From NCBI GenBank assembly GCA_024704765.1, contig JAKMXF010000321.1, forward strand, positions 682,001-746,000: DNA of 64,000 bases, in the 5' to 3' direction. The notes under the pieces are model-generated. The model was given only the letters and a program-made list of their open reading frames with translations, was not told where the DNA came from and searched no databases. The DNA comes from Oopsacas minuta. Its lineage: Eukaryota; Animalia; Porifera. The translations under genes and the position numbers were made by a program. Position 1 is the stretch's first letter, and each line of letters opens with the position of its first letter. Positions 29,701-63,871 of the stretch are shown piece by piece.

Positions 29701-29868
29701 GATACGACATAAAATGGACATTATATAGGCAGTGAGTTGATCCTTGTCATTCAGCAGGTCTGTCCAGAATCTCTTTGATTCTTCATAGTTTTGTTTCTTG
29801 TTATTGAAATAGATAAAATCATTGAAAACTCCGAATAATTCTTTTAGTTTACCTTCGTTAAGAGCCAT
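26800..29868 (-). CDS. Class IB PI3K regulatory subunit-like (p101/p84, PIK3R5/PIK3R6 family), single exon
   Basis: Blocks resembling p101 as recalled: FFLWPVPYCYFARDILNFIDAERICPGFSY; KLVIAGDDKSVAMIIKKY...VVFYYIPL; MGRLLGHLDGWHENFV; IIRDTVINFTRSATRPMLIRNY. 1022 aa. Confidence 0.72.
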   Translation of the reverse strand: MALNEGKLKELFGVFNDFIYFNNKKQNYEESKRFWTDLLNDKDQLTAYIMSILCRIITVDSVPITKSLPDIYDALILKCDTKANFDAWTTALVKEKEKDKKKKTTVYLPDPKEVVILRSRLLLTLHFVVTFYPDYNIGQIGTLISRWKIARDSKLLDFELKTISLFGGIDTLDVPKLLRKGTLDQSKNNVQKQIDTLIKQCAEKKNRGMRDKFPDFSPSLCLTIPVSDSLCLIKLLSVLELNPVNYVTAITIVLQALADITKEEIRMIETLQPPTRMDDREQLLPYLQLFKEFVIRAPSVSSKILDQAYQTVYAFFLWPVPYCYFARDILNFIDAERICPGFSYRNRMLSEYNLQVKDSTINTYERTYLLIDYAAPQALSFRESFKKADKNESAVKIHILKRAFVSILGINIDLTLLDRILRTAGSDTLDSWLSELINNTHEVLFAGQLDSQEILNKHLINLLTKMIEFFNEKNPDDKIDTIADVTDSPTPIPFVGLNTDSLPDTPITVKFLNSLMDPQSPEDIIDSILQDGGANVRNSSRGKAGRGVRPISSNVENYNNKDSFNLDNVFPPIHRVGSDSKVEPAPRQTTMSEKIKTFQRNKRDGSLSNKPSKEPTSPGEEPGADDEVDNDDVIYVDILGNIMSAKQKNVPKSKRGILAKELREGRAVLKLVIAGDDKSVAMIIKKYLHVQPKHQMSDINVVFYYIPLSNADTVSGGEAQLLTSNIDISQLQDPLTQYFYENQPTRGGDIWMGRLLGHLDGWHENFVTLPIQCALQLYPQFHLNVDDSGDPEKMRLKKRGEPKGIPLPPSPIQIIRDTVINFTRSATRPMLIRNYYVDMIDARGKRIESVMCHRLEMITREIGQKVTQVGTIPKPASVRLSLHAIQIDGTPYSQIDVPFQRYFVLKASNIPKPGDFWAANPAEAGFQLHAVVGEKVGAGGLTSKPRYGPSDQRHGWYVKQVVIEAMEKESFVVSIDKENPQANITHLIIRPTRMDMKGMDKGPTQLLEELSVPFMTFWPVDL

Positions 29869-30439: not shown

Positions 30440-30581
30440 TTAATGTTTCTTTGTTAAAAGTTCAACAACCTTTTGAGCGCATTTATATTTAGCTGCATCG
30501 TGTGAACTACCAATATCTGTATAAGAAATTCCTTCTACATGAATTACACACTGAAATTTCCTGTTCTCAACTGTCCGAACT
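30440..30581 (-). CDS. DICER1: Dicer exon 17 (dsRBD and stop; not in the ORF track)
   Basis: [35 protein letters not shown] then TAA; acceptor TAATTTAG|. Confidence 0.87.
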
Positions 30582-33500
30582 CTAAATTAAAAAAGTGATA
30601 TATAAATATTCTAATAATTTGATTATTTCATAGACACCTTAGATAGGAGGACTAGTATCTGGCACTCTCAAATTCCGGAACTTGGGTCCCATTGTATCAT
30701 GACAACGACGTTGTTGCGTCATAAAAATGGCAAATCCTGGAAGGTTTTAGTTTTTTCGCAGCTCCTGGCGCTACTTGACGCTCTACGTAGCTCATGCTGC
30801 TGGATTATGTAGGGTCATGGCCCCCACATAGAATTCTTAGGGCCTTACCAAATTTTTTATGTGCATACATCAAGCCAGGAATATTTTGTCTGGATAAAAT
30901 TTCGGATCATTAATTGTTGTAACTAACACGTCGCTTCAGTCTGTAATAGACCTATGATTGTGTGAAAGTATGTGATATTGCAACTTACTTAAATGTGATA
31001 TTGCCTTTAGGTTTGAGGTTGTAAAGTTGATTGATGGGATTTTTAGGTATTTCCAAGGCTATCTGATCTAAATAGACAATAAATATATAGAATTATACCA
31101 TAAATACTTATCAAAAAAATGTCCAGCCGATAGACTGGTAGTGTAGCTCAGGGTTATGTATTCGTTATTTGACCCCCTTGTAGAGTAATATGCAAAAAGA
31201 TGTGAAATATGATTAATCATATGATAAATCTGTGAATTTGTAACTTTCAAACTCTGAAATTCTCGAAATCGGACTCTACGCACCCAATTACCCCTCACAA
31301 CATGTTGAAACCTAATCTCTAGCTTGCTTTTGTATTTTACATAGAAATTTGTGTGGAAATATGATTAATCACCAAAAAGGTGTGAAATATTGACTTTAGA
31401 AAAAATTCATACCCGAGGTGCAAATCTCTGACCCAAAATGTATACATATGCCAATTTTCAGGTTCCTTCGACTACTAGATTTCGCATGGCCGCGCGGACG
31501 GACGGACGTCGCAGATCGTCCATACCATTAGGGCATCTCCCTATAGGAGCTGCAATAAAAATATATACGTATATTAATACCTATTATCGGTCTGAATATA
31601 GGTCCAAACACATCCCAAACAGTGTCTAGTGAGAATCTAGAATCAAGGAATACAGCAGCTACAATAGCCTCTACGATATCAGCTAGAGGTTTAGGATAAG
31701 ATACTCTACCATAGTCTTTAGCCTAAATAACAATTCTTAATTATTAAACCAAACAGCAAAATTCCAAGTAAATACGCTTACGTTAAAATTCTTGCTCTGT
31801 GTCGCCTCAAGTCTGTGTTCAATCTCTGAGTTTTCAATTGAGACCTTTAATCTGTCATTTGACAGTAAACATTTGTGCCATTGGTGGCCAAGAGCTATCA
31901 TACCCAGTCGTGAGTTGTTAACGATAGCAGATCTTATTTGGCTTAGTTGCTCTGGAAGGTAGTCCTTGTTCTTTTGGTAGATATATACACATGTGAAGTA
32001 ATCCAGTAGCGCATCTCCTAGGAACTCAAGCCGCTGATAGCTAGGCCTGAATATTAAAAAAATCATTCAAATACATACACATACATAGAACTCGGATAAG
32101 AGGTACCCTTAAGCTTAGGGAAACAAAAAAATTAGTACCCACTGAGTGTATTTGGGCACTAAACTTTTGGCTTGAAAGAAGTAGTACTTAATAACCAAGA
32201 GTACGTCTTATCCGAGTACGCATTATCCAATTTCTAATATAATTAGTTTATCATGAAAATATAAAGACAAGGTCATAGTAATTATTGAAAGTTGCCAAAT
32301 GTCTACGATAGAAGGAATATAAAGTGGAATCATACCGCTTACAAAAAAAATGTTTGTATTTTATCGCATATCGTCATATATCAAACAAAAAACACCTTGA
32401 CATACATACTACTTCATCACTTTGTAATATATCATACTATCGCAGCGTTAGCTAGTATTCAGTGATGCCGCAGAGAGTTACGGCAACCAAAAAATGACTA
32501 CAAAGCGTAATAGCCACAAATGAAAGTACTTATGTAGATTGACGCATAGCTATCAATACATCTAGAATGTTATGTAATTGAGCTACACTTAAGAGCAGTG
32601 TTATTTTAATCATCACTTCTACTTTACGTAACCCTTAATTAATCACAGTTTGTAATTAGGTATTGATTAAGAGGAGTATAAGAATTATAATACAGTATAA
32701 CAACTACGTATAGCCTCGGGTATTAAATCATGCAGGTGATATACGAATATTAAATGCTTATTTTAAACCAATATTTTACCCCCGACCTAGTAGTTTAATG
32801 TAAATCTAACCTTGCATTATCCGTTGGTGTAATTTTCAGCATGAAAGAAGGATGAGTAAACGCCTCAATTAACAATGAAATATTCTCAAACTGGAAATTA
32901 AGAACTGATTCTTGGAATCCTTGAATATTGGCGAGAAAAGTCCGTGGTAAATCAGATAAATCTTCACTAGAAGACTCCAAATGAAGTTGTGTATATTCAT
33001 ATTCATTTGCATAGTGAGAGAAGGCATTAGGTGGATTGAAGAAATGACCCATTTCACCATCATGCTTACTCAGTGTAGAATCTATTTTCTGTGTATTGTA
33101 TTCAATACCCATGTCTAGATAGGATATGAATCTCATGCCTTGCTGAATACCTCCTGAACACACATACGAACTGAGTACTGCTTCAATACAATCAGCTGAT
33201 GTCTTATCACTGAATTGTTGGAATCTGAAAGGTAAGGAGGAGGTTACCTGAGGATCTGATTTAGTGTGATAGCTTAAATTCTCAGATAAAATCAATAAGC
33301 CATCTGATGTAGTTATCTTGTCTTTATCTGGTATATTGTTAGCAATTGCATCTAGTGTGGTTATCAGTACATTATCATTGTTTCAATTAATTCTAGTATT
33401 TGCAAAGGAACTGAAAGGAAATTTTGCAAACTTCCATTGAATTATTCGAAATATTAGTTTTACTATTTTTATAACTTATTAGTGATTGATCTAAAACAAC

Positions 33501-36500
33501 CACAAATTGAATCAATTCTAACCAAAACAAGAACCAAAATATATTATTAACTCGAAAACAAATGATTTCAATTACAGTCAGATATGTGTAACCTGCCAGA
33601 TCAACTAGATTGCATCATAACAGATTCCTAATACAAAATGAATAAGCTAGGCGACGAAAAATGGGAATGATATGTTATGCGTACGAGCCATAGAACCTGG
33701 ATTACCCTGTTTGAAATGTATCTATAAACGATTCGTTTCAAATCTAATTAATTGCAACTCTACTTACCAACTAATGCGTTTTTCGCGAATGCAAATCCAG
33801 GAGGAGAATAGTTTTTTTTCAGAGCAAACGATTCTGATCCAATTATGTGTACAATAGCCTTCTTTACAGCAAGTCCGTGGAGAGTTTCATTAGAGATAAA
33901 TTTAGTTCTTAAACGAGTGAGATCCCCCTCACTTCTCAAATTGCTGTGTGTAAACACGTGAAGAGATATTATCAGTTTAAGGAGACTATCACCAATGAAC
34001 TCCTGACGTTCAAGATTTATCAGATCAACAGCTGATGTGGCTACAAGAGTATAAATGTTATTACAACTTAGCAAGAAAGCGTAATTGACCATTATTTTGT
34101 AACAAAATAAGACGATGACAATTGTGGGACAATTGTGGGATAATAGTGATTTTAGAAATTCAAATTCGTCCAAGCCTGACCAAAATACCTGCCAAGGATA
34201 AGCATTTGAGGGTTTGGAGTTCCAGAAGATTCAAACAAATTGTTTTTTCATTTGATAAGTTGAAATCGTTCCAGTACATGATAGGAATAATTATGAAATC
34301 ATCTTGAGGCGGTTAAAGCATAGATGCAATATATAAAATCGGATATATTTCCAATTAAATGTAGCTAACTAGGCAATAGGGTTACACGTTAAAATTAATA
34401 TGAATTTGAATCGATTCACTTTCATTTACACTAAATTGAATTCTGTAATAATATGTCCATCAGTGTATTGAGTCCATTAATTATAAATAGAGTGTGGTAC
34501 TAGTTAATAGAGCAAAAATATTTTCTACAAATGGATTACAACACAAATAAATCTGAAAATAATCTTCAAATGAATTCAACAATGATATCTCAAATATTTC
34601 CATCTCTTCACACTCCGCTAAGAATGCCAATACCACCAACAGCCCTGGCTTGGCTTAGACCATCTCCAAATTCTCAATGTTTAGTAACAGGAATGCAAAA
34701 CGGAAGTATTGGAATAACCTGGTATACAAATAATTCAGTACAAACAACCAGTTTAACTCTATCTCATATCCTGAGTCCTATATCTCATGTCAGCGCTTCT
34801 TCTGACGACAAGCAGGTAGCAGTAGGAGGATATTACGGTACCCTTATGATGTTAAATGTAGGCGAGGCTCCAACCGTTGAAACACGAATGCTAACCTCTG
34901 TTAACATGCTAAAACAGACTATTTTAGGACTGAAATGGTCATGGAATGGAGACAGAGTAGCCTGCTTAAGAGCAAAGCAGAACAAATCTACTCCTCTATC
35001 TCTGATGATATACTCCAATATTTCTAGCTCTCAATACAACAATATAGAGATGACATTTCCTAGGAGAATAGTCGGGGATGCAATGAATAAAAATGATATC
35101 GATACATTCAGTCAGAGGATTGCATGGAACCATGATGATGCTTCTCTCTTCATGACATTAACACACGACTCTTTACTACAAGTCTCTACACAGACATGGA
35201 GGATAATATCAAGTTTACAATTAGGATACTCTACACAATTACACGTGGTAGCAGCTCACCAGTTAATAGCGGTAGACACTAATAATCGTCTAATATCCTA
35301 CAATACAATAACCAACAGTCTCAAAGAGTTGAATACAAATGTAGAGTCTATTATCACACGAAATAATCAGATATTAAGCATCACAAATCAACCACTAACA
35401 GGTAGAAAGCTCACAATATTAAACTCATCAGGAACACAGTTAAATCAATTCAAGTTACCAGCTAAACAACGCATTATGTCATCATCAATTAGCCCAGATT
35501 CTTCCATGTTATTCTACACAACTCCTACAGAGATCTCCTCGCTTATACTCTATTCTAAAGTAGCAACTCTTAAAGAACTGTGCATGACAGCAATTAACGG
35601 TTACAGATTAACTACCAGTCGTCTACCTATACATTTACAGAACCATGTGAGTAATCATCACAATATGCTACTGCCATTAGGGGATGAAGTAGAATTCTGT
35701 GTTCATAAGATTGAGAAGAAAAGGAGATTTGGATTAAACACATCATCTATTGTTGTCAATAAGCATCATCTAGGACTAGTACTAGAAGTAATGCGGTTTG
35801 TGAATTCAATCGGTAATATTGCAAAACTTAAAGAAATGAAAAGTTCATTCGGATACAACGAAAGGAAGAGAATTTTAGAAAAGTTACTTCCCAATAGTAT
35901 TAGCAATCCAGATAAAGATACTAGAATAAAATGGAACAATTCTAGAAATAAATTCACCTTACAGTATAACGGTGAAAAAGCTGTTCTAAGGTTTAAAGAA
36001 CAGACAATTTCTATAACTGGTTGTATGGAAAAAGAGTTCAAATTAATCAACAGAGATGGTGGTATTGTCATACAGTCAGATGAACATTACTTAGCAACAA
36101 TAACTAAAGAAAGGAATTCATCCAGATTGAGATTACACACGACAAAAGAGCTAAAGCTCACACTTACACTATTAATAGCATTAGTTATTATTATTCGCAA
36201 TTAATTTCATATTTTGTTATGCACATGTACATTTCACACACAAGATTAAACGAATTTATCACAATTTTTCCCTGGGGGGAGGGGGGAGGGGGGAAATGGA
36301 AGAATAACCATACATACATACATAGCTATAGTAGCTAAAACTTGAAATAACTTCTGGAGGCGTGTATTCAACATTATTTTAGCTGTAGAATTATGGGTGG
36401 GGAAATCATAAATGGGCCAAACTATGAATGGAAATTCAACACAGATTTAAGTAATTAAAGTAAATTCATGAAAAAGATAGGTATTGGATATTGTGTTAAT

Positions 36501-39500
36501 TGGCCTAAAAAGGTCTGTCTACATTATACCACCATATCCAATATCTGTATTATGTATAATACATTGTACCAAAACGTATTACGTAATCGGAATACCGTAT
36601 TTCCCTGAATAAACGCCGGGGATTAAATAACTAATTATCATCATCACCCTCTGGAAAACTTTTTCAATAAAATTTAAGCCTTTTGACTATACAACAATTG
36701 GGAGAATATTTTTCAATATTGTTTGTATGCTAAAGATTGGAAAATACGATATGTAGCATATTTCTTGAATAAGAAAAATTGTGAGAGTGTGTATGTATAA
36801 TAATCAGCATAAACAAACCAGTAAAGGCAGATAACAGAGAAATTATGTTAGGCCTATCTCCACAACTATTAACACATAGCTCTGGTATAGTATCATAATT
36901 CAAGTGAGCGGGTGTATCCGTAACTCTTTTAACAATCCCTGTATCAATATCATTTCCTGTAGCTGTAACAGGAGAAGTAACGTATGTGTCTACAGAATTA
37001 GAGAACTCTAGCATCAAGATGAATCTCTCTACTCTATACACTATAGATGGTAACATAACACACAGCCTCCATAGAGTACTGGGAATAGGATGTGCTTTCA
37101 AGTGAGGAGAGAAGAAATATGTTTTATGTCTCTTATTATCATAATCTCGTTTGGGGAGATCCTTCCCTTGAGGAGTTTTGTGTCTAAAAATATGATAGAA
37201 CTAATTTCAGTCAACTTCCGTTATATCCGTTATATCGAAGCTCAAGTAATCGCGATAATTACTTTGATATAAGCGGAGTTCGATATACCAATCAAACATA
37301 TGTACTTTGTGGGTTTTGGTCCATATTTGTACAATGTAAGCAAGCATTTCGGTATGTTAGTGTTCGTTAGGAGATGGCTGTATATCACAAAAACAATTCG
37401 AAGATTAAAATTATCTATCATAACTGAATGGCAGAATTTGGGAATGGAAATTTGTCTCATGAAAGCCCCCACCAGTAGTAGAGAGGGTGAAAAATACCGC
37501 AATATACTCGACGCTATTAAAACCTATAATTTTCAATGAACAAGTTTAGGCAAGATAACATCTACGATGATAACTACCTTGAAGTTGTTAAGTTGTAATG
37601 ACCAGAGACATGTATGCCTTCTAATGCACTTCTAGAGTAATCTTCCTTAACAAATACCAAACCATATTTACTGGTAAGATGATCAGAATAAGTTGAGTAT
37701 CTTTCATCTGGGAATTCGGAATTTAGAGTAACTTCTGGTATCATTCTTATAATATGATAATATTGATTAGGATTAGGATGTGTGTTTGGAGGAGAAACAA
37801 CTCGTTGCACATAGAACTCATCTTCAAGTGAATTTAGAACTGCTTTTGATGTAAAATTATTCAAAGATTCTAAGTCAAAATCCCATTTTTCATTTTGAAG
37901 CTGTTTAAGAGGGCAAATCAAGAAACTTCTGTTGTTAGCCTGATCGGGTGAGAATTCAAAATTCCTACCTTTATCATTGTAACTCCAAACTTCAAGGAAA
38001 ACGCTATGCTGAAACTTTAGTATTTCTGAGTGTACCCTTTCTAGAGGGGTTTTGGTTTGTATTGGTTTTATAGTCACTTTTAAATTCAATCCATGATAGA
38101 ATACTTCAAACGTTGGTATCTACGTAGAAGCAAGAATATAAATATAATACATTTATTTCTCAGTTAAAACAATTGAGAAATAGCTCTATTAGGTAAAATA
38201 TCTGAACCTTTAATGGTGTTTTTAGGCTCAAGCACACGCCCAATAGACAATATCAATTATACTTGTATAAATTCAGTATAATACTACATGCAAGTTGATT
38301 TGTTGGTACATTTGGTCACATTTGGTCATGTTGGTCATGTTGGTCAAGTTTGTTCAGAATGGCCATAGAAGATCAATCAACTTCAAGTAGAATGTCTATG
38401 TGGCCAAAGTGTGGACAAATTTGGTTATACGACCACAAGTTGAGGAACCCTGTGGGTTAGAATATAGCCTCTGATTATGATAGATTTATCAAAACAAGTA
38501 CATATGTTTAGTATTTTGATTGTATACAAATCATTTATGTAAATACCTCTTTATAAGGGACTTTCTCAGCTGTAATAATTCCAATATAATTATTTGGTTT
38601 AACTTTTTCATACCTCTCGTTGCTCTCCTGTCCCCAGTAATCTGCTCCACTCTCTTGCAGTACAATAATAAATATATAAATATAGTTCTTATCACTAATG
38701 TTGACTGGTTTACTCAATGCTGACGGAATCTATAGAAATAAGTATATGGTAAATCTTGCTCAGTTACATTATATGGCTGTGTTAAGTTTCTAATACAAAT
38801 TGTATGGTAGAATAATCGTTAAACCCATAGAGTGCGTAGATTTAGTAATGTATCTTTCCTCTCTACATAAATACATTGAAAATATATTATGGAAATAATA
38901 GAATTCTATACTTGATGTGTTTGGTTCATTAACTACCATTCGAGCCTGTTACGAAGAGAAATAAGAAGCCAAAAGAGAGGAGAAATTCGACCCACAAATT
39001 AGATAGTCTCATATCTTCTTACAAAAGGAATTCATTATTATAGCTAATCATATTTGAGATAGAATAATAAATTAAGTGAGAGAGAAATGAACAGTCGAAT
39101 TTTGTCTTCTTGCGTAGTCGTATTAGCCCTACTGATAAGTCTCAATGTAAAATGCTCCAGTGGGAATGACTATAACTGTGTGGGTTGTACCCTGGTGATA
39201 GGGTTGGTACTAGAGTATGTCGAGTTTAACAACCTCACAATGGAGCAAGGACTTAAGACGCTATGCTCATATCTCCCCGCCGAATACGGAGTAACATGTA
39301 AAGAGCTAGTCAATATATTCGAGATACCTTTACTTCTAATCCTCGAGCAAACAAGTCATCCAGATCTGATATGTAGAGGATTAGAGCTATGTAAAGGTAA
39401 TTCTACGAAATGCACTCTATACCCCAAGAGCAGAGATGTACCAGCAAAAGGCATAATCAAAGGCAACCAGTATCGGCCGGGACAAGTTAAAATACCAAAG

Positions 39501-57500: not shown

Positions 57501-60500
57501 AATTTCTACGGCTCCACACGTGAATACAAACATATAGGCACTGATTACGAGCATTTGAATGAAGGAGTTTTTGAAGGCGTAGCGTATAGAGGAAGAATAC
57601 TCATGGATCTTAATACAGAATTAGGCAAATACCCAGCAACCACACAAGCAGCCAAGTTTACAAGAGAAAAATCTCTTGCAAAAGGCTTCAAACGTCTAAA
57701 ACATAGAATCTACGTAGCTTTCTTCCATGCTACACAAATAAAACCGCATACAAGTGAAGTTTCATTCGAAGTTAGTATCGGTAACTATGGTTACCGAGAA
57801 GATCCGAATGCTATTATAGCACCATCCACTACCCAACCCACGAAACCTGTAACAGAGAACAACAGTCTCTTCTTCCTGCCCTGGGGCAAGATGAAACCCT
57901 GTTGTGTGATACCATGTTATTGGGAAAACAACGTATACCGTATTGAAAGCATGAACATACTAAATTATATTGCAGATGAACTTGAGTTGGAGACGATACA
58001 AGTAAGAGAGCTAATGAAGAAGGAGGATGTCGATAAAAAAGAAGTTTCTCAGGCGATTCTTAACATGCTTGAAAAGCTATCTACTCTGTTAAGTGAACCA
58101 CTACCTCTCTTACCGAGAGATGCACACACAATGCTAGATATTCATTGGTGGGGACTACGTGATAAAGAACGTAACGCTATTCTCAATGAAATCACAGGTT
58201 TGAAAGATTTAATCGATAAAGAAGAAGTAGTGTATATTTGTGAAGGATTCGTCAACAGAATCAGGGTAGTAGCAGTTGAGAGTCAAATCTCTATCCCTGA
58301 CATCATAATATGGATGATTCACGGTGTTGACCGTGTAGCTGTTGCTAGAATTCCTATACAGGATCTATTCTATTCTAAAAATCCGATAGCTAGAGGTAGA
58401 CTATGTGGCAAAATACATACAAGATTCCTAAGGGAACCAATAAAAGTAGCGAAAAATGATGTACATAGAGAATATAATGCTCAGTTGAGGATAGCTGCAT
58501 GGGTTGGAAGGGAGAAAAATACCTTTAATTGGGAGGAATGTATACCAGGAGGAACAGTTATGACATTCGCCGAAACATACGAGAACCAAATATTCACTGC
58601 GATTTCTTGGGGACCAGTTCCGTTTGGCCTGATTCCAGCTTGGTCAGATAGTACAGGTAAAATGAGTCTACCGAAAGAGAGCTTTGGAATTCCCATAGGA
58701 TGGAAATGGGATGATGACTGGATTGTTTCATCAGCAGAAGACATTGAATATGACCCAGAATATAAATTACATCGAATAATGGAAGAGACATATGAGGTGA
58801 GAACGAAGGATGAGGATGATCAGGATTGGAACGATACTAAAACAGTTTGGGAAGATGAGAACGGCAATCAAAGCTCAGCTCCACTAAACGTAAAACCTCC
58901 GAAGGGTTGGGACTGGGATGAATCTAAATGGACAATAGACACGAACAGAGCAGTGGATGAAGAAGGCTGGGAGTACGGAAGTAATCCTGACTCGAGGGAG
59001 TCTTTCAATCCAATCGAACTAGCAGACTCTATCATTAGAAGAAGGAAGATAGTAAGGGTTAGGGTTAGGAAAGCAGATGAGCTAGGGAATGATAAAAAGA
59101 GTACCAGTAGTAGCAGTGATGACGAACAATGGGAATATGCAACAACATTAAGTGGTCCATTTTACAGAGTCAAACAGATAACACATTTATTCCGTCGCAG
59201 GAGATGGCTTAGAAGAATGGTAGCTACTGAGAAGAATGCCTCTAATATATTTAGCATAACCCAAGAAGAAGTTACTAGTCATATAGAAGTAGTAAAGAGT
59301 AAGAAAGATAAACCTACACCAAAAAAACACAAAAAACTTCGTGAATCTCCAAGAATTTTCATGTGTTTCGAAAAGGAATACAGATGGACATTAAGAGCAT
59401 ATATATACCAAGCACGTACACTTCTATCAGGTGATAAGAATGGATTATCAGATCCTTTTGGTGAGGTTTCAATCTCAACTTCAAGTCAAAAGACACGTAC
59501 AATCAATAAGTCATTGTCTCCTACCTGGTGTCAAACTTTAACCTTCAATGAACTGGTGATTTATGGTGAGCCTGAATTCACTCAAAGCACCCCACCTATC
59601 GTGGTTGTTGATATCTACGATAAAGATATATTATTGAGAAATGAGCCTCTGGGACAAGCCTTAATCCGACCTGAGGTAATACTCAATGTGGAGGGACCTG
59701 TTACAAAAATGAAATGGCATAATATCATATATGCGGGTAGAGATGAAGGACAGCTATTAGCATCATTTGAATTGATATTACTCGATCCAGAAGGCAACAA
59801 CCTCAAGAAAATCGAAGCTTTAGAACTTTCGAGTGATCAAACATACTGTAAAATTCCAGATACAATTAGACCCAAGACACAGTTGATGCGCATAGAAGTT
59901 CTACTATGGGGATTAAGAGACATGAAAAGATTCGAACTAACATCTGTTAATCATCCGTTCGTAAGAATATCCTGTGGGGATTTTTACATAGACAGTGAAC
60001 ATATAAAAAACGCGAAAATAAACCCAAACTTTCCAAACCCTAGCATTCATTTGGACTGTGAGCTTCCAATAGAAGCAGTATACATGCCTCCACTTCAAAT
60101 ACAAGTCCTGGATAAGAGACTGTTCGGCAGGACACCAATTGTCGGTATACACAGTGTTACTACACTGAAAACATTTATAGTACACACCCCGGGATCCACA
60201 CAGGCACTCAATGTATGTCCAAATCTAAAGGCTAATATACCAGAATTTGTTGGAAAATTAGAGGAAGCAGGAGAGCCGAGTAGTCCTGGTACCAAAATAG
60301 CTTCTGCTCTGACTCACTTAACAAATCGAATAGAATTAGAATCAATTGAGAGTTCTGACTTAGAAATGGAGTATTCAGATTTCGATTGGTGGAGTAGATA
60401 TTACGCATCAATTGGTGATGAGAGGAGATCATCTGGATTTGAGAGTAAGGGTTATGAAAAGATGACGTATTATAAAGGGGAATTAGAGAAATGGTTCGGA

Positions 60501-63500
60501 AGCTTTAGAGATAGAACGAAAGATTTTCAGTTAACTCGGGGAAAAACTTTCAGCAGGAAATCAGAAGTGTCAGGACTATTCAAAGGAGATATAAAAGTCT
60601 ATCCTCTCTCAGAAGATGACACCCAAGATGTTCCGTTAATATTCAAAGACATACCAGAGCATGGTGTTAACGAAGTGACCGTTCGGGTATATATTATACG
60701 AGGAAGGCAATTCACTCCACAAGATCCATTCGGTAAATCAGATCCCTACATCAAAATAGTGCTAGGAGAGAAAGAAATGATAAACGACAAAGAGAATTAT
60801 ATTCCTAATAATCTCAATCCACTTTTTGGGAAGATTTTCGAATTCAATACATTTATCCCACAAGAACACGAAATGAGAGTTGTAGTGATGGATCATGATG
60901 CTCTATCAGCTGATGATCTGATCGGTTACACTTCTGTTGATTTGGAAAATAGATATCTATCAAGTATGCAGGCTACTTGTGGAATACCAAAATACTATTT
61001 TATTGCTGGACCTTGTAAATGGAGACATCAACTCTTACCTACTGTGTTGCTAGATAAATACCTGAAATCTAATAGATATGGCAGTGTAAGGTGGGTTGGA
61101 AACACAGAAGTGAATTTATGCAATCAGAAGTTTAGATTGAAAGAGGATTTCGAACCACATGGGATATTTCCACACATTTCTAACGAAATAGAGAGGAAAA
61201 TACTAACTAGACAGTTAGGCGGACAGAAACAGAGATTAGCTCTATATGTATTGAACCTATTCGAGCATGTGCCAGACCATATCGAAGAGAGAAAACTTAT
61301 AAATCCGATCCAGGGAGAAGTACCTCAAGGCTATCTAGAAATGTTCGTTGATATTTTCCCTAAAGCAGATGGAGTATTACCAGAACCTGTCGATATAGCT
61401 ATCCGACAGCCAGAAGACATGGTGTTGAGGATGGTTGTATGGAATGCAAAAGATGTGGAGCTATTGGATAATCCTATCTATCAAGACGATCCTACAGCTG
61501 ACATATACATCAAGGCGTTTCTACGAGGCCAGAATAAGAGCAAATCTACTGATGTTCACTACAGAAGCATGAATGGAGAAGGCATGTTTAATTGGAGATT
61601 AGTGTTCCCATTCAAATATCTACCGATTGAGCAGGAAATTGTTAGTACAGAGAAAGAGCATTTCTGGAAAATGGATGGCACAGAGAAACGTGTAGAACCT
61701 GAATTAGTTGTACAGATATGGGATAATGACCAATTCCTGCCTGATGATTATATTGGCAGTGTTGAATTCAAGTTAATTAACTTCTACAAACCGAGGAGAT
61801 CTGCATTTTGGACGAATTTGGAGCAAATAACACCCAGAGAGGATCACTCAAACGCTGACAATATTTTCAAGAGAAAGAGACTACGTGGCTGGTGGCCTGT
61901 TGTGAAGATTGAAGATGGAAATAATCCAAATATTACAGGAAAGATTGATATGGAAATTGAAATTCTAACTGCTGCTGAGGCTATCGACAAGCCAGCTGGA
62001 GAGGGCAGAGATGAACCGAATGCTAATCCGTTCCTAGCGAAACCAATTCGCCCTGCAACTTCCTTTGCTTGGTTTACTTCTCCTTTCAAAAGCTTCCGTT
62101 ACATTATCTGGAAACATTACAGAACTCAGATCATCATAGCTGCCATATTACTCGCTCCTGTTGTGCTATTTCTACTAATTTTACTATAATACGCCAATTT
62201 GAAGTATTTTTAGCATATAGGATATTAGATTAGATATCTAGTGAGAGTGTCGTATATATTGCTTCTTTGATATGAATAAATATTAGTAGTTTGACTATAT
62301 AGTAAACTTTCGTTATAACGAAATGCTCGGAACTCTGGTTTCATATCGTTATAATCGGTATTTCGTTAAGCGAAGTACTATCAATTATTTTCAAGCTATA
62401 GAGGTAAAGAATCACTTAGTTATAACAGGAGTTGACAGTAATAGGGGAATAAGAGTTCATGGTTTAACTCCTTTTAATATTATCAATACAAGCAGAATAA
62501 ACCGAAGGCTATAGAATAATTCTCAAATATAAATAGGTAAAATGCTGATGCTCTTTCCTCATGGATCAGGATGGATATGTGAATAATTGGCCTGTCACAT
62601 TAGCCAAATTTATATTAATAGAGAAACTACAATAATTTTCGAGAAAATCATATAACCTCTGAATAAGAGAATACACATTTATAGAAGTGAAAAGAAAGAT
62701 ACCTGTTGGAGCTAAGAACATTATCCTCTGTCCTGGTAATAGAGATCCTCCCTCTACCATTTTCCTAATTAACATACAAGCTATGTGTGTTTTACCCGCT
62801 CCAGTCCCTAGAATACGTGATGAGCAATAAAAATAGTAACAGATCTCGAAATATATAATTACGAAAGCAGAAGTATATATAATCTCAACACAATCATATT
62901 TCGAATAATCTCTTTTCAGTTATTAAATACAGTTTAATAAGTTTCGAATCCAAGAAAATATACAATTTGATGTGTATATGTTCTGCTTTCTCAGTTCCGA
63001 ACCGGTAATGACCCCTCTATCAATCAGATCACAGATCTAATTGAAAATGATTGTTCGGGGCCTACTGGAACAGGGAATCCTTATAGGGAACACCGTAAAC
63101 CTACTGGCCAGTTTCACGCTTCGACTAATAAGCTGTTCACAATAAGTAACCAAGGATGTTCTATTAATTTCCCTAATGGACTGGTTTATAGATAGGGACG
63201 CGGGGTACATTAGTTTAGGTGTGAACGATGTCAAAATAGGATATTTTCATTCAATCTGAATTGTTTACTAATATGAATTTCGAAAGAAAGCTTAATAATT
63301 ACATGAAATAAATAAACCATTTTACACAAACTAAATTCACTAGATATAATGTAGTACTCAAACTACTCATAAAAGGTATACACATTCATTTTATGCTTCC
63401 ATCAATGGTTGTCTCCACCTCCCCAATCCAGACATATATGTGTCAAAGGTGGAATTTGATACGAGGGCTTTTCAAATTTCCTACCCCTGGGAGATTTCAA

Positions 63501-63871
63501 AAAGTAAAATCCCCATATCTTATGTAGGGTATTCTGGTGAGTAATTAGGGATAAAATGAGTAGGTCTTATCGAGTCTTTCTATAGTACAATAATATAACG
63601 TTAAGATCCTATCTCGAACAGAATTTGATTCTCCTGATAATTGGAGAGAGAGAGAGAGAGAGGACGCAAACATTAGTAACATACCTAGTGCTATGATCCT
63701 ATTCCCATTGAGTGCAGATTGAAGTAACTCAGTCTGATAAGGTCTAGGCTTCTTCTCAGGTACAACCACATCATCTCTGTGTTGATCGTAGTTATTATTA
63801 TTGTAGCGTCTATAATGGTGCCGATTTTTATATTGGTTCTTCTTGTAATGGTGAGGATGCTGAGCTGCCAT
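30440..63871 (-). CDS. DICER1: Dicer (helicase, DUF283, platform, PAZ, RNase IIIa, RNase IIIb, dsRBD); 17 exons, 1559 aa
   Basis: Exons 63685-63871, 62703-62807, 48315-48657, 47080-47863, 46452-46640, 45821-46011, 45526-45667, 44661-44867, 38547-38729, 37578-38119, 36819-37183, 33768-34040, 32811-33351, 31782-32046, 31581-31722, 30989-31067 and 30440-30581 sum to 4680 nt. All introns are GT-AG and every junction keeps frame. The symbol denotes the family; orthology to miRNA-type Dicer-1 is not established. Confidence 0.93.
30989..31067 (-). CDS. DICER1: Dicer exon 16 (not in the ORF track)
   Basis: [20 protein letters not shown] (start of dsRBD); CTATTTAG| ... AA|GTAAGT. Confidence 0.85.
31581..31722 (-). 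CDS. DICER1: Dicer exon 15 (end of RNase IIIb; not in the ORF track)
   Basis: [27 protein letters not shown]; follows a 59-bp intron. Confidence 0.92.
31782..32046 (-). CDS. DICER1: Dicer exon 14 (RNase IIIb signature)
   Basis: [14 protein letters not shown] and [11 protein letters not shown]; ATATTCAG| ... AAC|GTAAGC. Confidence 0.94.
32811..33351 (-). CDS. DICER1: Dicer exon 13 (end of RNase IIIa, start of IIIb)
   Basis: [13 protein letters not shown] and [10 protein letters not shown]; CACACTAG| ... AG|GTTAGA. Confidence 0.9.
33768..34040 (-). CDS. DICER1: Dicer exon 12 (RNase IIIa signature)
   Basis: [14 protein letters not shown] and [18 protein letters not shown]; CTTGTAG| ... G|GTAAGT. 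Confidence 0.93.
34531..36204 (+). CDS. WD40 + SOCS-box + degenerate tubby-like protein (TULP4-like), nested in Dicer intron 11
   Basis: Beta-propeller-like N-terminus ([19 protein letters not shown]), SOCS box ([12 protein letters not shown]) and a C-terminal [16 protein letters not shown] resembling the tubby PxWN...Y.LDF.G motif. Confidence 0.6.
   Translation: MDYNTNKSENNLQMNSTMISQIFPSLHTPLRMPIPPTALAWLRPSPNSQCLVTGMQNGSIGITWYTNNSVQTTSLTLSHILSPISHVSASSDDKQVAVGGYYGTLMMLNVGEAPTVETRMLTSVNMLKQTILGLKWSWNGDRVACLRAKQNKSTPLSLMIYSNISSSQYNNIEMTFPRRIVGDAMNKNDIDTFSQRIAWNHDDASLFMTLTHDSLLQVSTQTWRIISSLQLGYSTQLHVVAAHQLIAVDTNNRLISYNTITNSLKELNTNVESIITRNNQILSITNQPLTGRKLTILNSSGTQLNQFKLPAKQRIMSSSISPDSSMLFYTTPTEISSLILYSKVATLKELCMTAINGYRLTTSRLPIHLQNHVSNHHNMLLPLGDEVEFCVHKIEKKRRFGLNTSSIVVNKHHLGLVLEVMRFVNSIGNIAKLKEMKSSFGYNERKRILEKLLPNSISNPDKDTRIKWNNSRNKFTLQYNGEKAVLRFKEQTISITGCMEKEFKLINRDGGIVIQSDEHYLATITKERNSSRLRLHTTKELKLTLTLLIALVIIIRN
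36819..37183 (-). CDS. DICER1: Dicer exon 11 (connector helix, start of RNase IIIa)
   Basis: [23 protein letters not shown] and [12 protein letters not shown]; ATTTTTAG| ... G|GTTTGT. Confidence 0.88.
37578..38119 (-). CDS. DICER1: Dicer exon 10 (platform and PAZ)
   Basis: [21 protein letters not shown] and HYNLTTSR; CTACGTAG| ... AG|GTAGTT. Confidence 0.88.
38547..38729 (-). CDS. DICER1: Dicer exon 9 (platform)
   Basis: IPSALS...NYIYIF...[11 protein letters not shown] matches the platform pattern; TTTCTATAG| ... GAG|GTATTT. Confidence 0.8.
39087..40772 (+). CDS. AOAH: Acyloxyacyl hydrolase (LPS-deacylating lipase), single exon, nested in Dicer intron 8
   Basis: Signal peptide, saposin-B domain (CVGC...LC...C...IC...C), [24 protein letters not shown] (nucleophile Ser), NRCNHRDY and IEPVDGFH (Asp/His). 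Confidence 0.95.
   Translation: MNSRILSSCVVVLALLISLNVKCSSGNDYNCVGCTLVIGLVLEYVEFNNLTMEQGLKTLCSYLPAEYGVTCKELVNIFEIPLLLILEQTSHPDLICRGLELCKGNSTKCTLYPKSRDVPAKGIIKGNQYRPGQVKIPKIPDDICDYPPFKEICRIIKQVEDHYPAQDFDKDHFSTIRTLRGSSWRGKDCNDFNKDIYPGRGDGKDIIVDTNCNGIVGSDPDTGESYEDMWCKGTQAMGTVILGDSVGAHFHLPEELVNPTLIGPLTYKYLPEMIENELDWPMESAATGYEESVWDPAKGEVISLYRQLRNKNRCNHRDYHNIAVNGAWSGTNSMGKIDKTLTRNATVDKPVFLILALLGNDVCNSHHTMNTMTTVTEFKTNMNAVLDYLDGYLPEKSVVVSVGLADGRVLYDNMHNRIHPAAAFSRDVNYRTFYNFLNCLEISPCFGWLNDNSTWRSMTHQRAMNLSQGLKEVVKAKNFKRIIGIYMDSPVAEMISDWEKQGGKGWELIEPVDGFHTSRMGQAQTAKILYQQMEKNYPEIIPPVNPHNEDIVNMFGTQNGH
40924..42042 (-). CDS. MRPS9: Mitochondrial ribosomal protein S9, single exon, nested in Dicer intron 8 on the same strand
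   Basis: Basic N-terminal targeting-like peptide, HRLAKMMG...ALNYLLP, and the S9 core ([33 protein letters not shown]). Confidence 0.93.
   Translation of the reverse strand: MYRTTFITCRSFLTYNGILQSCYMSTLAKDTPLTTYSKHYKEQMKHYIAAKHRLAKMMGANPVGFTEKDMKEALNYLLPHHIRPIPAKPQILHPELLRRRDRVEFKVETVDRDNRPLEAGFYMRHPCFQNFQLITIRFKRYLETEDITFKPNNIPELPLHPDCTLKTILDTNAFKYADKEAVELAIGEILTNWHYDKILAELTELINHPNADDDVLAFVRPFFEKVVEIDPLNQNTITFRHESGCQIVQENGTRKSSIAVVQVWLGEGYIIVNGKSVSDYFTHFQDVMQIIYPLQLIGVLGKYSMDCKVIDGGHSGQSGAIRLALAQCLAFLEPQAEETLSNAGLLWRDIRRREGKKPGRMRARRGYTWRKR
42401..42590 (+). mobile_element. Helitron-like relic, 5' part (family shared with 50300-50631)
   Basis: A|TCTATATTAT start and (CTGT)n microsatellite. 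Shares CGTTGTCAAGGAA and CGCATAACTATGTATTTAT with the minus-strand copy. 3' end not located. Confidence 0.4.
43353..44057 (-). CDS. SAM-domain protein with Cys-rich segment and unknown C-terminal domain, nested in Dicer intron 8 on the same strand
   Basis: ATG at 44057 (234 aa). SAM motif [11 protein letters not shown]...[23 protein letters not shown], followed by [13 protein letters not shown]. Confidence 0.8.
   Translation of the reverse strand: MAVATTQPKITPADAENVLKSMDVSKVRSWNERDVTNNFLKPLGFEYCSKVFEDNKVNGVCILAMRDEHLKEMNVLLLGDRIQMLEYMEVLKKKRKQADRGKTLWEGQTPVKSYAYADNCCEWLFWWCCPCCVFRTTWRITSQGIRHRKPRFFGESDTGFIDFRFLKDIETRHEKRCTVCCPYHQLVLYADDASVKSKEAEANSEEQIIISHPDCILIEDVVRNAWSDVRLVAD
44661..44867 (-). 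CDS. DICER1: Dicer exon 8
   Basis: [24 protein letters not shown] (end of DUF283); TTTTCAG| ... AAG|GTACTT. Confidence 0.9.
45245..45419. mobile_element. Tc1/mariner-pogo-like MITE in Dicer intron 7
   Basis: 25-bp TIRs CAGTGGAACC(C/T)GCATAAACCGACAC with one mismatch. TA on the right flank only. Confidence 0.7.
45526..45667 (-). CDS. DICER1: Dicer exon 7 (DUF283; not in the ORF track)
   Basis: [10 protein letters not shown]...[18 protein letters not shown]; CTTTTAG| ... CAA|GTAAGT. Confidence 0.88.
45821..46011 (-). CDS. DICER1: Dicer exon 6
   Basis: [22 protein letters not shown] (start of DUF283); donor TG|GTAAGA. Confidence 0.88.
46452..46640 (-). CDS. DICER1: Dicer exon 5 (helicase C-terminal)
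   Basis: [21 protein letters not shown] and [10 protein letters not shown]; TTAACAG| ... AAG|GTATGT. Confidence 0.94.
46884..47028. mobile_element. Old hAT/Charlie-like MITE in Dicer intron 4
   Basis: Ends CAGCGGTTCCCAAC and rc CAGCTGTTCCCAAC. TSD poorly preserved (4 of 8 positions match). Confidence 0.45.
47080..47863 (-). CDS. DICER1: Dicer exon 4 (helicase insertion, motif IV)
   Basis: Acceptor TTGCTAG|; [20 protein letters not shown] and GIVFVNRR; donor AAG|GTATGT. Confidence 0.9.
48315..48657 (-). CDS. DICER1: Dicer exon 3 (DECH box)
   Basis: Acceptor TTATTCAG|; [20 protein letters not shown] and ILGLSAS; donor AG|GTATAT. Confidence 0.93.
49011..49540 (-). pseudogene. Truncated paralog of the 53775-54917 membrane protein
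   Basis: ATG at 49540. YIGQG is followed by TGA where the paralog has TTA. Homology continues to about ...ARNKLRVK and then stops. Confidence 0.8.
50300..50631 (-). mobile_element. Helitron-like relic (family shared with 42401)
   Basis: Minus-strand A|TCTATATTAT start, (TTTG)n tract and blocks shared with 42401-42590. Inner boundary approximate. Confidence 0.4.
51036..51215 (-). pseudogene. Displaced 3' end of the middle membrane-protein paralog
   Basis: [20 protein letters not shown]...[15 protein letters not shown] parallels the intact paralog C-terminus. It begins with the 8-bp duplicate ACTCAAAT. Confidence 0.88.
51216..51769 (-). mobile_element. Internally deleted hAT element, copy A (554 bp)
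   Basis: TIRs CAGAG(C/T)TGC(A/G)AATGGGTCA and subterminal TGACCC arrays. Carries the hAT C-terminal dimerisation remnant ([16 protein letters not shown]...[11 protein letters not shown]). Confidence 0.93.
52078..52978 (+). pseudogene. Inverted 5' part of the middle membrane-protein paralog
   Basis: [11 protein letters not shown]...[19 protein letters not shown]...SKGTLTQI. One frameshift near 52390; ends at TSD ACTCAAAT (52971-52978). Confidence 0.88.
52979..53493 (+). mobile_element. Internally deleted hAT element, copy B (515 bp), inverted relative to copy A
   Basis: Same TIR family and an 88-aa remnant identical in protein sequence to copy A. Flanks are ACTCAAAT and TATGGGAT. Confidence 0.93.
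53775..54917 (-). CDS. Multi-pass membrane protein (about 7 hydrophobic segments, GPCR-like topology), nested in Dicer intron 2 on the same strand
   Basis: 380-aa intact ORF. N-terminal NNTS sequon, hydrophobic helices separated by basic loops, hydrophilic tail. No class A/B/C signature recognised. Confidence 0.7.
   Translation of the reverse strand: MNNTSDVQCVLDSLADVDYKAYYIGQGLGLIYTILCLLWLPYVIANIYSQIGNKRRIVTLMHLKSSSDYTNRLFMLKETLFRYVIFLVFLCFELIYCLHINIFGVMIFDPKPVRNIFHQIVPHCSIELHTFIRVSFDRGSIGICMNIIILFGDFSFSMMIWLFGASLLHLRFAARNKLRVKVVIHFILLGIVIYLIVVVLTYIPYTRVFGILLLGLMDQISFFIVLYIAKKRFFPAMNSRVIDAFHLHNTYVYLQQKRLLKQYKVIVFVFLFTSELYILKRFFLFDLFVILESISQNLCWFNVTYNLPMVIIISESTKTTLILIYTFCSVLLHFIDLVVYINFIIVNLNIMYVTAKGYLKHWFYDRERYRYQISSNPLLS
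55154..55245. mobile_element. 92-bp hAT-type MITE
   Basis: Ends CAGAGCAGTAGC and rc CAGATTCGTAGC; 8-bp flanks GTTACTTA and GTTACATA (7 of 8 match). Confidence 0.6.
56019..62189 (+). CDS. Type I ferlin (myoferlin/dysferlin-like), 2056 aa, single exon, nested antisense in Dicer intron 2
   Basis: Multiple C2 domains (KSDPYC, LVDPYV, SDPFGEV, GKSDPYI), FerI (NLLRPAG), [13 protein letters not shown], FerA/FerB, DysF ([17 protein letters not shown]), [27 protein letters not shown] and a C-terminal TM segment. Confidence 0.95.
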   Translation: MLRVEVQGASGLKNQDYTKKSDPYCIIKFQGQSDKTKTIERNLSPIWNQVLEFEIRAPLTGTENIDLEIKDENTFGRDTLMGKASILIRTAVKSGRQPVASQGLLDKSGKTTLGTVNLIVSYNPPHERGRAGTYVERIAEDQNSPLEENIGIGMGDDWEIVENENPDEKDAGLSGLDSNKSAIARADKFKRKQARIRLPNEPLDFQLQIHCIEARRLSGGGGNISPSCAINIGSQSKSTSSVDSSINPVWDETLIFYFRIKPSELFNTMLMIKVVNSKYVVMENLIGSFQMDIGVIYDEPNHGFIQKWLLLTNIKDTSAGPKGYLKISIQVVGPGDSPSPLPHYDPISSHTDDIEGNLLRPAGINLQPATFKIRIYKAEDVPQMDSAYLETVKKIFSKNATESKNLVDPYVTVSYAGHTVTTGVRWTTCNPEWNESLALGTRFPSMSERIQIRLYDKDTTSQDDIIGTTFLYLSNISLPEGDNGFLPTFGPAWVNFYGSTREYKHIGTDYEHLNEGVFEGVAYRGRILMDLNTELGKYPATTQAAKFTREKSLAKGFKRLKHRIYVAFFHATQIKPHTSEVSFEVSIGNYGYREDPNAIIAPSTTQPTKPVTENNSLFFLPWGKMKPCCVIPCYWENNVYRIESMNILNYIADELELETIQVRELMKKEDVDKKEVSQAILNMLEKLSTLLSEPLPLLPRDAHTMLDIHWWGLRDKERNAILNEITGLKDLIDKEEVVYICEGFVNRIRVVAVESQISIPDIIIWMIHGVDRVAVARIPIQDLFYSKNPIARGRLCGKIHTRFLREPIKVAKNDVHREYNAQLRIAAWVGREKNTFNWEECIPGGTVMTFAETYENQIFTAISWGPVPFGLIPAWSDSTGKMSLPKESFGIPIGWKWDDDWIVSSAEDIEYDPEYKLHRIMEETYEVRTKDEDDQDWNDTKTVWEDENGNQSSAPLNVKPPKGWDWDESKWTIDTNRAVDEEGWEYGSNPDSRESFNPIELADSIIRRRKIVRVRVRKADELGNDKKSTSSSSDDEQWEYATTLSGPFYRVKQITHLFRRRRWLRRMVATEKNASNIFSITQEEVTSHIEVVKSKKDKPTPKKHKKLRESPRIFMCFEKEYRWTLRAYIYQARTLLSGDKNGLSDPFGEVSISTSSQKTRTINKSLSPTWCQTLTFNELVIYGEPEFTQSTPPIVVVDIYDKDILLRNEPLGQALIRPEVILNVEGPVTKMKWHNIIYAGRDEGQLLASFELILLDPEGNNLKKIEALELSSDQTYCKIPDTIRPKTQLMRIEVLLWGLRDMKRFELTSVNHPFVRISCGDFYIDSEHIKNAKINPNFPNPSIHLDCELPIEAVYMPPLQIQVLDKRLFGRTPIVGIHSVTTLKTFIVHTPGSTQALNVCPNLKANIPEFVGKLEEAGEPSSPGTKIASALTHLTNRIELESIESSDLEMEYSDFDWWSRYYASIGDERRSSGFESKGYEKMTYYKGELEKWFGSFRDRTKDFQLTRGKTFSRKSEVSGLFKGDIKVYPLSEDDTQDVPLIFKDIPEHGVNEVTVRVYIIRGRQFTPQDPFGKSDPYIKIVLGEKEMINDKENYIPNNLNPLFGKIFEFNTFIPQEHEMRVVVMDHDALSADDLIGYTSVDLENRYLSSMQATCGIPKYYFIAGPCKWRHQLLPTVLLDKYLKSNRYGSVRWVGNTEVNLCNQKFRLKEDFEPHGIFPHISNEIERKILTRQLGGQKQRLALYVLNLFEHVPDHIEERKLINPIQGEVPQGYLEMFVDIFPKADGVLPEPVDIAIRQPEDMVLRMVVWNAKDVELLDNPIYQDDPTADIYIKAFLRGQNKSKSTDVHYRSMNGEGMFNWRLVFPFKYLPIEQEIVSTEKEHFWKMDGTEKRVEPELVVQIWDNDQFLPDDYIGSVEFKLINFYKPRRSAFWTNLEQITPREDHSNADNIFKRKRLRGWWPVVKIEDGNNPNITGKIDMEIEILTAAEAIDKPAGEGRDEPNANPFLAKPIRPATSFAWFTSPFKSFRYIIWKHYRTQIIIAAILLAPVVLFLLILL
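62703..62807 (-). CDS. DICER1: Dicer exon 2 (Walker A)
   Basis: Acceptor TTCTAG|; completes LGTGAGKT and runs to RIMFLAPT; donor G|GTATCT. Confidence 0.92.
63685..63871 (-). CDS. DICER1: Dicer exon 1
   Basis: ATG; PRPYQTELL (Q motif) and NRIIALG; donor G|GTATGT, phase 1. Confidence 0.88.

Follow-up and report, generated by a model that had tools for sequence, protein, structure and literature searches.

Introduction

Nesting of genes within the introns of other genes is frequent in flies, mammals and glass sponges. In Drosophila melanogaster, about 10% of the genes are nested, with a median of 7 introns in the hosts vs 1 in the guests, and the introns that harbor guests are long (median of 4.8 kb vs 138 bp for the other introns); 71% of the guests are antisense to their hosts, many of them are young duplicates, 72.5% of the same-strand guests are single-exon genes, which has been read as selection against mis-splicing, and co-expression is lower in nested pairs than between genes that are merely adjacent (PMC3814207). 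In mammals, more than one tenth of the genes are involved in nesting, with a slight orientation bias and a preference of the guests for long 5' introns; hosts carry 3-4 guests at the 95th percentile and 77-186 at the extremes (PMC11694760). Among glass sponges, the compact genome of Aphrocallistes vastus consists mostly of single-exon genes (12,409 of the 19,578 transcripts) and harbors 2432 nested genes, or 12.4% of the total, with conservation of many of them; the guests are single-exon genes and the hosts intron-rich (PMC10282587). There is extensive microsynteny between A. vastus and Oopsacas minuta, nearly half of all genes being syntenic, and in both of them the glassin gene is nested and consists of one exon; the O. 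minuta annotation includes only 83 nested genes, and such low counts in some genomes have been blamed on a disabled option of the gene predictor (PMC10282587). The mean O. minuta gene has 1.59 introns, and the mean intron size is 341 bp (PMC10280926). Nested genes, single-exon genes and Dicer all go unmentioned in the O. minuta genome paper, a literature search found no paper that names both Oopsacas minuta and Dicer, and the word Dicer does not occur in the A. vastus paper (PMC10282587).

Here we describe a stretch of 64,000 nucleotides of the O. minuta genome, hereinafter the window (all coordinates refer to it), in which a single Dicer gene hosts six guests in three introns. As in A. vastus, single-exon guests reside in an intron-rich host within a compact genome that consists mostly of single-exon genes. 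The locus also resembles the nested pairs of Drosophila in that the host is intron-rich, the guest-bearing introns are long, the same-strand guests are single-exon genes and both orientations occur. In contrast to the antisense majority and the many young duplicates of Drosophila, the guests of Dicer are evenly split between the sense and antisense orientations (three each), and five of them are old, conserved genes of single-copy type, including one for a mitochondrial ribosomal protein. Hosts with multiple guests occur in mammals as well, but the six guests of Dicer exceed the mammalian 95th percentile, and their combined coding sequence (12.5 kb) exceeds that of the host (4.7 kb) within a 33-kb gene. 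Six guests in one host is a high number that nevertheless has precedents. With 16 introns, the ordinary ones of roughly 400 bp, the Dicer host belongs to the intron-rich end of the O. minuta genes and is not odd.

Results

Reconstruction of the Dicer gene

With a GC content of about 35%, the window is AT-rich, and it contains many long single-exon ORFs. The Pfam matches of the open segments on its minus strand are collinear with the domain order of Dicer: the N-terminal part of DEAD (62.9-62.6 kb), DEAD/ResIII with the DECH motif (48.7-48.3 kb), Helicase_C (46.6 kb), Dicer_dimer (45.7 and 44.9 kb), RNase III (34.2-33.8 and 32.0-31.5 kb) and dsrm (30.5 kb). When the exons were joined by picking in-frame GT..AG sites, a Dicer gene of 17 coding exons spread across 33.4 kb was rebuilt (63871-30440, minus strand; Table 1). 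Its coding sequence of 4680 nt encodes 1559 aa and contains the terminal stop only; all 16 introns are of the GT..AG type, and the 13 that lack guests are 59-877 nt long. The first-pass annotation had proposed that 17 exons reassemble without a frameshift into a Dicer with an intact Walker A motif, DECH motif and both RNase III catalytic sets, and this is what the rebuilt protein contains (GTGAGKT at residue 63, DECH at 170, ERQEFIGD at 1090, DCIE at 1224, QRLEFLGD at 1355 and DIVE at 1454); the sizes that it gave for introns 2, 8 and 11 were reproduced exactly.

Table 1. Exons, guest-bearing introns, guest genes and neighbours of the Dicer gene in the O. minuta window, and the corresponding models of the public annotation
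Feature	Position	Strand	Remarks
Dicer exon 1	63685..63871	-	ATG at 63871; helicase Q-motif region PRPYQ; matches P0007 residues 8-32; kept in relatives
Dicer exon 2	62703..62807	-	Walker A GTGAGKT ... FLAPT; same donor in L001-L007
Dicer exon 3	48315..48657	-	ALVKQQ ... DECH
Dicer exon 4	47080..47863	-	Helicase insertion domain and beginning of second helicase lobe
Dicer exon 5	46452..46640	-	Helicase_C
Dicer exon 6	45821..46011	-	
Dicer exon 7	45526..45667	-	Dicer_dimer, first part
Dicer exon 8	44661..44867	-	Dicer_dimer, second part
Dicer exon 9	38547..38729	-	Platform; X4 joint 38547/38119
Dicer exon 10	37578..38119	-	Platform/PAZ; X4 joints; orthologous ORF of L004 with weak PAZ match
Dicer exon 11	36819..37183	-	PAZ connector helix; matches human Dicer 1022-1065; X4 joints
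Dicer exon 12	33768..34040	-	RNase IIIa, ERQEFIGD
Dicer exon 13	32811..33351	-	End of RNase IIIa with DCIE and start of IIIb; X4 loose end at 33768
Dicer exon 14	31782..32046	-	RNase IIIb, QRLEFLGD
Dicer exon 15	31581..31722	-	RNase IIIb, DIVE
Dicer exon 16	30989..31067	-	dsRBD, first part
Dicer exon 17	30440..30581	-	dsRBD and stop codon; Pfam dsrm
Dicer intron 2	48658..62702	-	14045 nt, GT..AG, phase 1; contains ferlin, TM380 and degraded TM copies
Dicer intron 8	38730..44660	-	5931 nt, GT..AG, phase 0; contains SAM, MRPS9 and AOAH
Dicer intron 11	34041..36818	-	2778 nt, GT..AG, phase 1; contains the WD40 gene
Guest 1, ferlin	56019..62189	+	Intron 2, antisense, single exon, 2056 aa; Pfam C2 (five), FerI, FerB, dsrm_Ferlin, Ferlin_C
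Guest 2, multi-pass membrane protein (TM380)	53775..54917	-	Intron 2, sense, single exon, 380 aa; without Pfam family
Guest 3, SAM-domain protein	43353..44057	-	Intron 8, sense, single exon, 234 aa from first ATG; Pfam SAM_1/SAM_2
Guest 4, MRPS9 (mitochondrial ribosomal protein S9)	40924..42042	-	Intron 8, sense, single exon, 372 aa; Pfam Ribosomal_S9; atlas uS9m
Guest 5, acyloxyacyl-hydrolase-like (AOAH)	39087..40772	+	Intron 8, antisense, single exon, 561 aa; saposin and GDSL lipase
Guest 6, WD40 beta-propeller protein	34531..36204	+	Intron 11, antisense, single exon, 557 aa
Degraded TM-gene copies	48990..53460	both	Intron 2
Robl_LC7 gene	64475-64768	-	Upstream of exon 1
PI3K-p101-like and TRAF genes	26800-29868 (region)		Downstream of exon 17
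Annotated 142-aa gene	62566-63871		Exons 1-2 read on into the intron
Annotated 885-aa gene	51776-43353		DEAD, Helicase_C, Dicer_dimer, SAM; exons 3-8 fused to the SAM guest
Annotated 398-aa gene			Dicer_platform; exons 9-11
Annotated 432-aa WD40 gene			Truncated WD40 guest
Annotated 1510-aa gene			Two RNase III, Dicer_dsRBD, PI3K_1B_p101; exons 12-17 merged with the next gene downstream

The locus encodes one full-length Dicer of the animal type, with a DExD/H helicase at the N-terminus followed by DUF283, a probable platform/PAZ region, two RNase III domains and a probable dsRBD. The helicase is identified by the Walker A and DECH motifs, by the Pfam DEAD/ResIII and Helicase_C matches and by matches to Dicer helicases in PDB; for the exon with the DECH motif, the score is 103 bits with the reconstructed animal Dicer AncD1D2, compared with about 70 bits for human Dicer and for fly Dcr-2. 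DUF283 (PF03368) was detected on exons 7 and 8 (E-values of 4.9e-5 and 3.3e-8, respectively), and the RNase III family PF00636 twice, both domains retaining the catalytic acidic residues; in the PDB search, exon 12 hit the RNase IIIa domains of human Dicer and Dcr-2. The Pfam domain calls were made on separate exon pieces, and the pieces of exons 9-11 gave no match to platform or PAZ; exon 9 alone found no Dicer in PDB. Exon 11 matches residues 1022-1065 of human Dicer, the connector helix (E-value of about 1e-3), and weak precomputed matches were found to Dicer_platform on the annotated 398-aa model and to PAZ on the orthologue from one of the relatives (L004). The final exon alone matches dsrm with an E-value of 0.0037, which is below the curated cut-off, and the precomputed Dicer_dsRBD match is weak. 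A phmmer search with exon 4 (272 aa) returned 11 matches, mostly short fragments, among which the full-length Dicer of the window was absent. Compared with animal Dicers (human DICER1, Drosophila Dcr-1 and Dcr-2, and AncD1D2), the sponge protein shows the same domain order and catalytic motifs; it falls short of the 1922 aa of human Dicer, and its PAZ region is too diverged for detection by Pfam in the exon pieces of the window.

Guest genes

The ORFs of all six guests are intact and consist of a single exon each, and comparison of the coordinates places each coding sequence wholly within one Dicer intron. The ORF coordinates agree with the earlier claim of six intact guests on both strands of introns 2, 8 and 11 with a total coding sequence of about 12.5 kb. 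The assignment of the guest in intron 11 was upheld in part: it is a WD40 gene on the plus strand, and the label 'TULP4-like' that it had been given comes down to a weak WSB/TULP4 lead. Hexamers resembling AATAAA or ATTAAA are present within 400 nt past the stop codon of each of the six guests. Retroposition of the guests, with poly(A) tails and target-site duplications as its marks, was set aside, given the age and conservation of the guests and the prevalence of single-exon genes in these genomes.

Part of intron 2 (48990-54917) is taken up by a membrane-protein array that consists of one intact copy of 380 aa and degraded copies. The same intron contains a 434-nt inverted repeat (51316-51749 and 53020-53453), 99% complementary and carrying identical ORFs of 88 aa, which may resemble the C-terminal part of hAT-type proteins.

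RNA and DNA read evidence

Contigs from four public runs of one sample (X1-X4) were placed on positions 33400-39399, a segment that includes intron 11 and one end of intron 8. The runs X1-X3 are DNA-like, with a flat depth of 60-90 and overlapping contigs that continue through the introns without joints and tile most of the segment. Run X4 is RNA-like, with depths of about 600-1200 over the Dicer exons and about 0-90 over guest-free intron sequence. The X4 depth reaches 12-25 thousand over the WD40 guest and 5-11 thousand over the start of AOAH, that is, 10-30 times the depth over the Dicer exons, with low values in the neighbouring intron sequence, contig depth being a poor measure of expression.

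The X4 contigs include a joint, 36819|34040 (depth 755), that skips the 2778 nt of intron 11, as well as the joints 37578|37183 and 38547|38119; all these joints read CT..AC on the plus strand and hence GT..AG on the minus strand. The RNA link across intron 8 is the loose end of one contig at 38731, 221 letters long, of which the 30 letters shown, the first ones, are identical to 44663-44692 in exon 8. Another loose end, at 33768, corresponds to 33327-33351 in exon 13. Thus, both intron 11 and intron 8 are spliced out of real transcripts at the sites that the first-pass annotation had put forward for checking by RNA, the junction 36819/34040 being directly joined and the junction 44661/38729 being supported by the loose end.

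A minor X4 joint, 34189|34040 (window 34040-34557, minus strand), with a depth of 43 vs 755 for the main joint, ties the sequence adjoining the start of the WD40 guest to exon 12. The donor is CAG|GTATTT, and a reading frame that begins with a Met (MYWND...) continues across the joint into RNase IIIa without a stop. Such a start within intron 11 could yield, from a minor transcript, a Dicer isoform devoid of the helicase and PAZ that would comprise the RNase III part only. This putative isoform resembles the Dicer isoform of mouse oocytes that is driven from an intronic promoter.

Intron 10 contains a short dispersed repeat (37227-37287), over which the depth of the DNA runs rises from about 70-90 to 320-630 and at which many contigs of X1-X4 break with unrelated loose ends. 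Relative to the assembly, X2 and X3 show a 9-nt deletion at 38322, in intron 9, and single-base differences between the runs from this sample and the assembly are located at 35630, 36104, 39072 and 39170; the deletion and the four substitutions are probably alleles.

Conservation of the locus in relatives

A search with exon 3 identified ORFs with 66-85% identity on long contigs of ENA assemblies. The loci from relatives analyzed here (L001-L010 and L012) come from seven ENA samples and include two extensions and one contig that was found via MRPS9. The order common to the seven samples, where the contigs reach, is exons 1-2, ferlin, exons 3-8, SAM, MRPS9, AOAH, exons 9-11, WD40 and the RNase III exons, and the guests have the same orientations as in the window, with ferlin, AOAH and WD40 antisense and SAM and MRPS9 sense. 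The comparison with related species, which had been suggested as a check of the gene model, accordingly supports all three long introns. The order of the flanking genes is also conserved, with Robl_LC7 upstream of exon 1 (in four samples) and the PI3K-p101-like gene followed by TRAF downstream. When the Dicer model was compared to the relatives using tblastn, the matches broke at residues 717 and 1080, which are the positions of introns 8 and 11, and most of the RNase III catalytic motifs were found in the relatives as well.

Five of the guests align with their counterparts in the relatives over the full length, without gaps and as single matches, at 38-86% identity (68-81% for ferlin, 76-86% for SAM, 57-76% for MRPS9, 66-73% for the AOAH-like gene and 38-56% for WD40). 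Located in the same place and in the same orientation in the relatives, these five genes are ancient residents of the Dicer introns. In contrast, none of the relatives has the membrane-protein array in intron 2, and a homologue with 22% identity is found outside Dicer; the array is thus a recent, lineage-specific insertion that doubled the intron.

In three of the ENA samples, the locus is present on a pair of contigs (L004/L005, L006/L007 and L009/L010), with nearly equal coverage where it is stated in the contig names (297x/299x and 320x/321x). The paired contigs presumably are separated haplotypes, with the full nest in both copies.

Public annotation and alternative interpretations

The public annotation of O. 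minuta (GCA_024704765.1, examined over 30924-63871 of the window, loci L011 and L013) wrongly splits Dicer into four gene models, two of which are chimeric (Table 1). The MRPS9 and ferlin genes of the window map to contig JAKMXF010000321.1 of this assembly, which is listed as Oopsacas minuta in PMC10542158. The annotated 142-aa gene suggests an alternative structure for the 5' part of the locus, in which exons 1-2 form a separate gene outside the mature Dicer mRNA, and transcription starts just upstream of exon 3, resulting in a Dicer without Walker A. In the relatives, the ferlin start codon is located about 0.7-1 kb from exon 3, in the divergent orientation, and the sequence in between could be a shared bidirectional promoter. 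However, exon 2 keeps GTGxGKT and an identical donor (...FLAPT G|GT) in all five samples checked (L001-L007), and the reading frame past this donor immediately runs into early stops in four of the five, so the extension contained in the 142-aa model is not conserved. In four samples (L001-L004 and L007), in which intron 2 spans 6.9-7.8 kb, the start of exon 3 is shared as well, being in phase 1 and reading AG|AT GCN CTN GT, which completes the same split Asp codon. The protein joined across intron 2 reads FLAPT-D-ALVKQQ. Exon 2 aligns with residues 135-173 of Arabidopsis DCL4, exon 3 begins at residue 172 of DCL4 and residue 71 of AncD1D2, and residues 31-69 and 64-180 of P0007 align with exons 2 and 3, respectively; given these contiguous alignments, the join restores helicase motif Ia without a gap or overlap. 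We consider a Dicer that starts at exon 3 to be quite unlikely and, on the strength of the sequence comparisons, predict splicing of the 14-kb intron 2 at the modelled sites (62703|48657).

It is extremely unlikely that the public annotation is correct in a broader sense, i.e. that the helicase-DUF283, platform-PAZ and RNase III parts belong to independent genes and there is no nesting, as the NCBI models of 142, 885, 398 and 1510 aa would imply: the RNA contigs of X4 link exons 11 and 12 as well as exons 8 and 9, two of the models are chimeras (one of Dicer and SAM, the other of RNase III and PI3K p101) whose partners are separate ORFs in the relatives, and the annotation is poor in nested genes, with only 83 reported (PMC10282587). 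A mis-join in the assembly that brought the exons together or inserted the guests, which the first-pass annotation itself had named as a way in which its model could fail, is contradicted by the even and almost full tiling of 33400-39399 with DNA-like contigs of X1-X3 and by the same arrangement in seven independent samples, in some of them in both haplotypes; the chance of such an error is negligible. A different kind of interpretation would make the nest itself functional, with the antisense transcripts of ferlin, AOAH-like and WD40 pairing with the host pre-mRNA into long dsRNA that Dicer would sense, with feedback on its own expression, or with the genes being kept together for co-regulation. 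The antisense guests AOAH-like and WD40 are apparently highly expressed relative to the host, and the arrangement is kept across relatives in which MRPS9 is only 57-76% identical. However, nested pairs in Drosophila are less co-expressed than neighbours (PMC3814207), and given the extensive microsynteny of glass sponges (PMC10282587), conservation of the nest requires no special selection, so a function of this kind appears highly improbable. It is likewise very unlikely that duplexes of the host pre-mRNA with antisense guest mRNAs are processed by Dicer such that the locus would serve as a feedback sensor of Dicer activity.

Discussion

The interpretation that we favor, with a probability of roughly 0.85, is that of a conserved nested-gene locus of a hexactinellid sponge in which a 33-kb Dicer is spliced over presumably independent, intronless guests, the membrane-protein array being a lineage-specific addition. 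Run X4 shows both canonical GT..AG splicing across two of the guest-bearing introns (8 and 11) and an RNA depth of two guests (WD40 and AOAH-like) far above that of the host. In the proposed mechanism, the RNA polymerase that transcribes the host would traverse the guests without terminating, even at the poly(A)-signal-like hexamers that follow the three on the sense strand, as happens with nested genes in other animals. The guests probably possess independent promoters, and their lack of introns would help to avoid mis-splicing with the host.

Two general claims of the first-pass annotation have to be toned down. The view of nested genes as typically single, small and antisense is overstated, same-strand guests and hosts with multiple guests being known (PMC3814207, PMC11694760, PMC10282587). 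Nor does nesting of this type call for an unusual solution for transcription, splicing and polyadenylation, considering how common it is (12.4% of the genes in A. vastus). Nothing special to Dicer has to be invoked; the locus fits the known patterns of nesting and reveals no new kind of system.

Since previous work has established how widespread nesting is in the compact genomes of glass sponges, the main new result is the error in the annotation of Dicer. As the public models split the gene and fuse its pieces to other genes, the earlier reconstruction with 17 exons corrects the annotation. Errors of this kind distort comparisons of gene content and domain architecture, and O. minuta is a species that is invoked in arguments over the loss of core animal genes. 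The locus itself is a clean, deeply conserved case of multi-gene nesting, with housekeeping guests on the sense strand, in a lineage that is rich in nested genes, and it is therefore usable for studying transcriptional interference and the bypass of poly(A) sites beyond flies and mammals.
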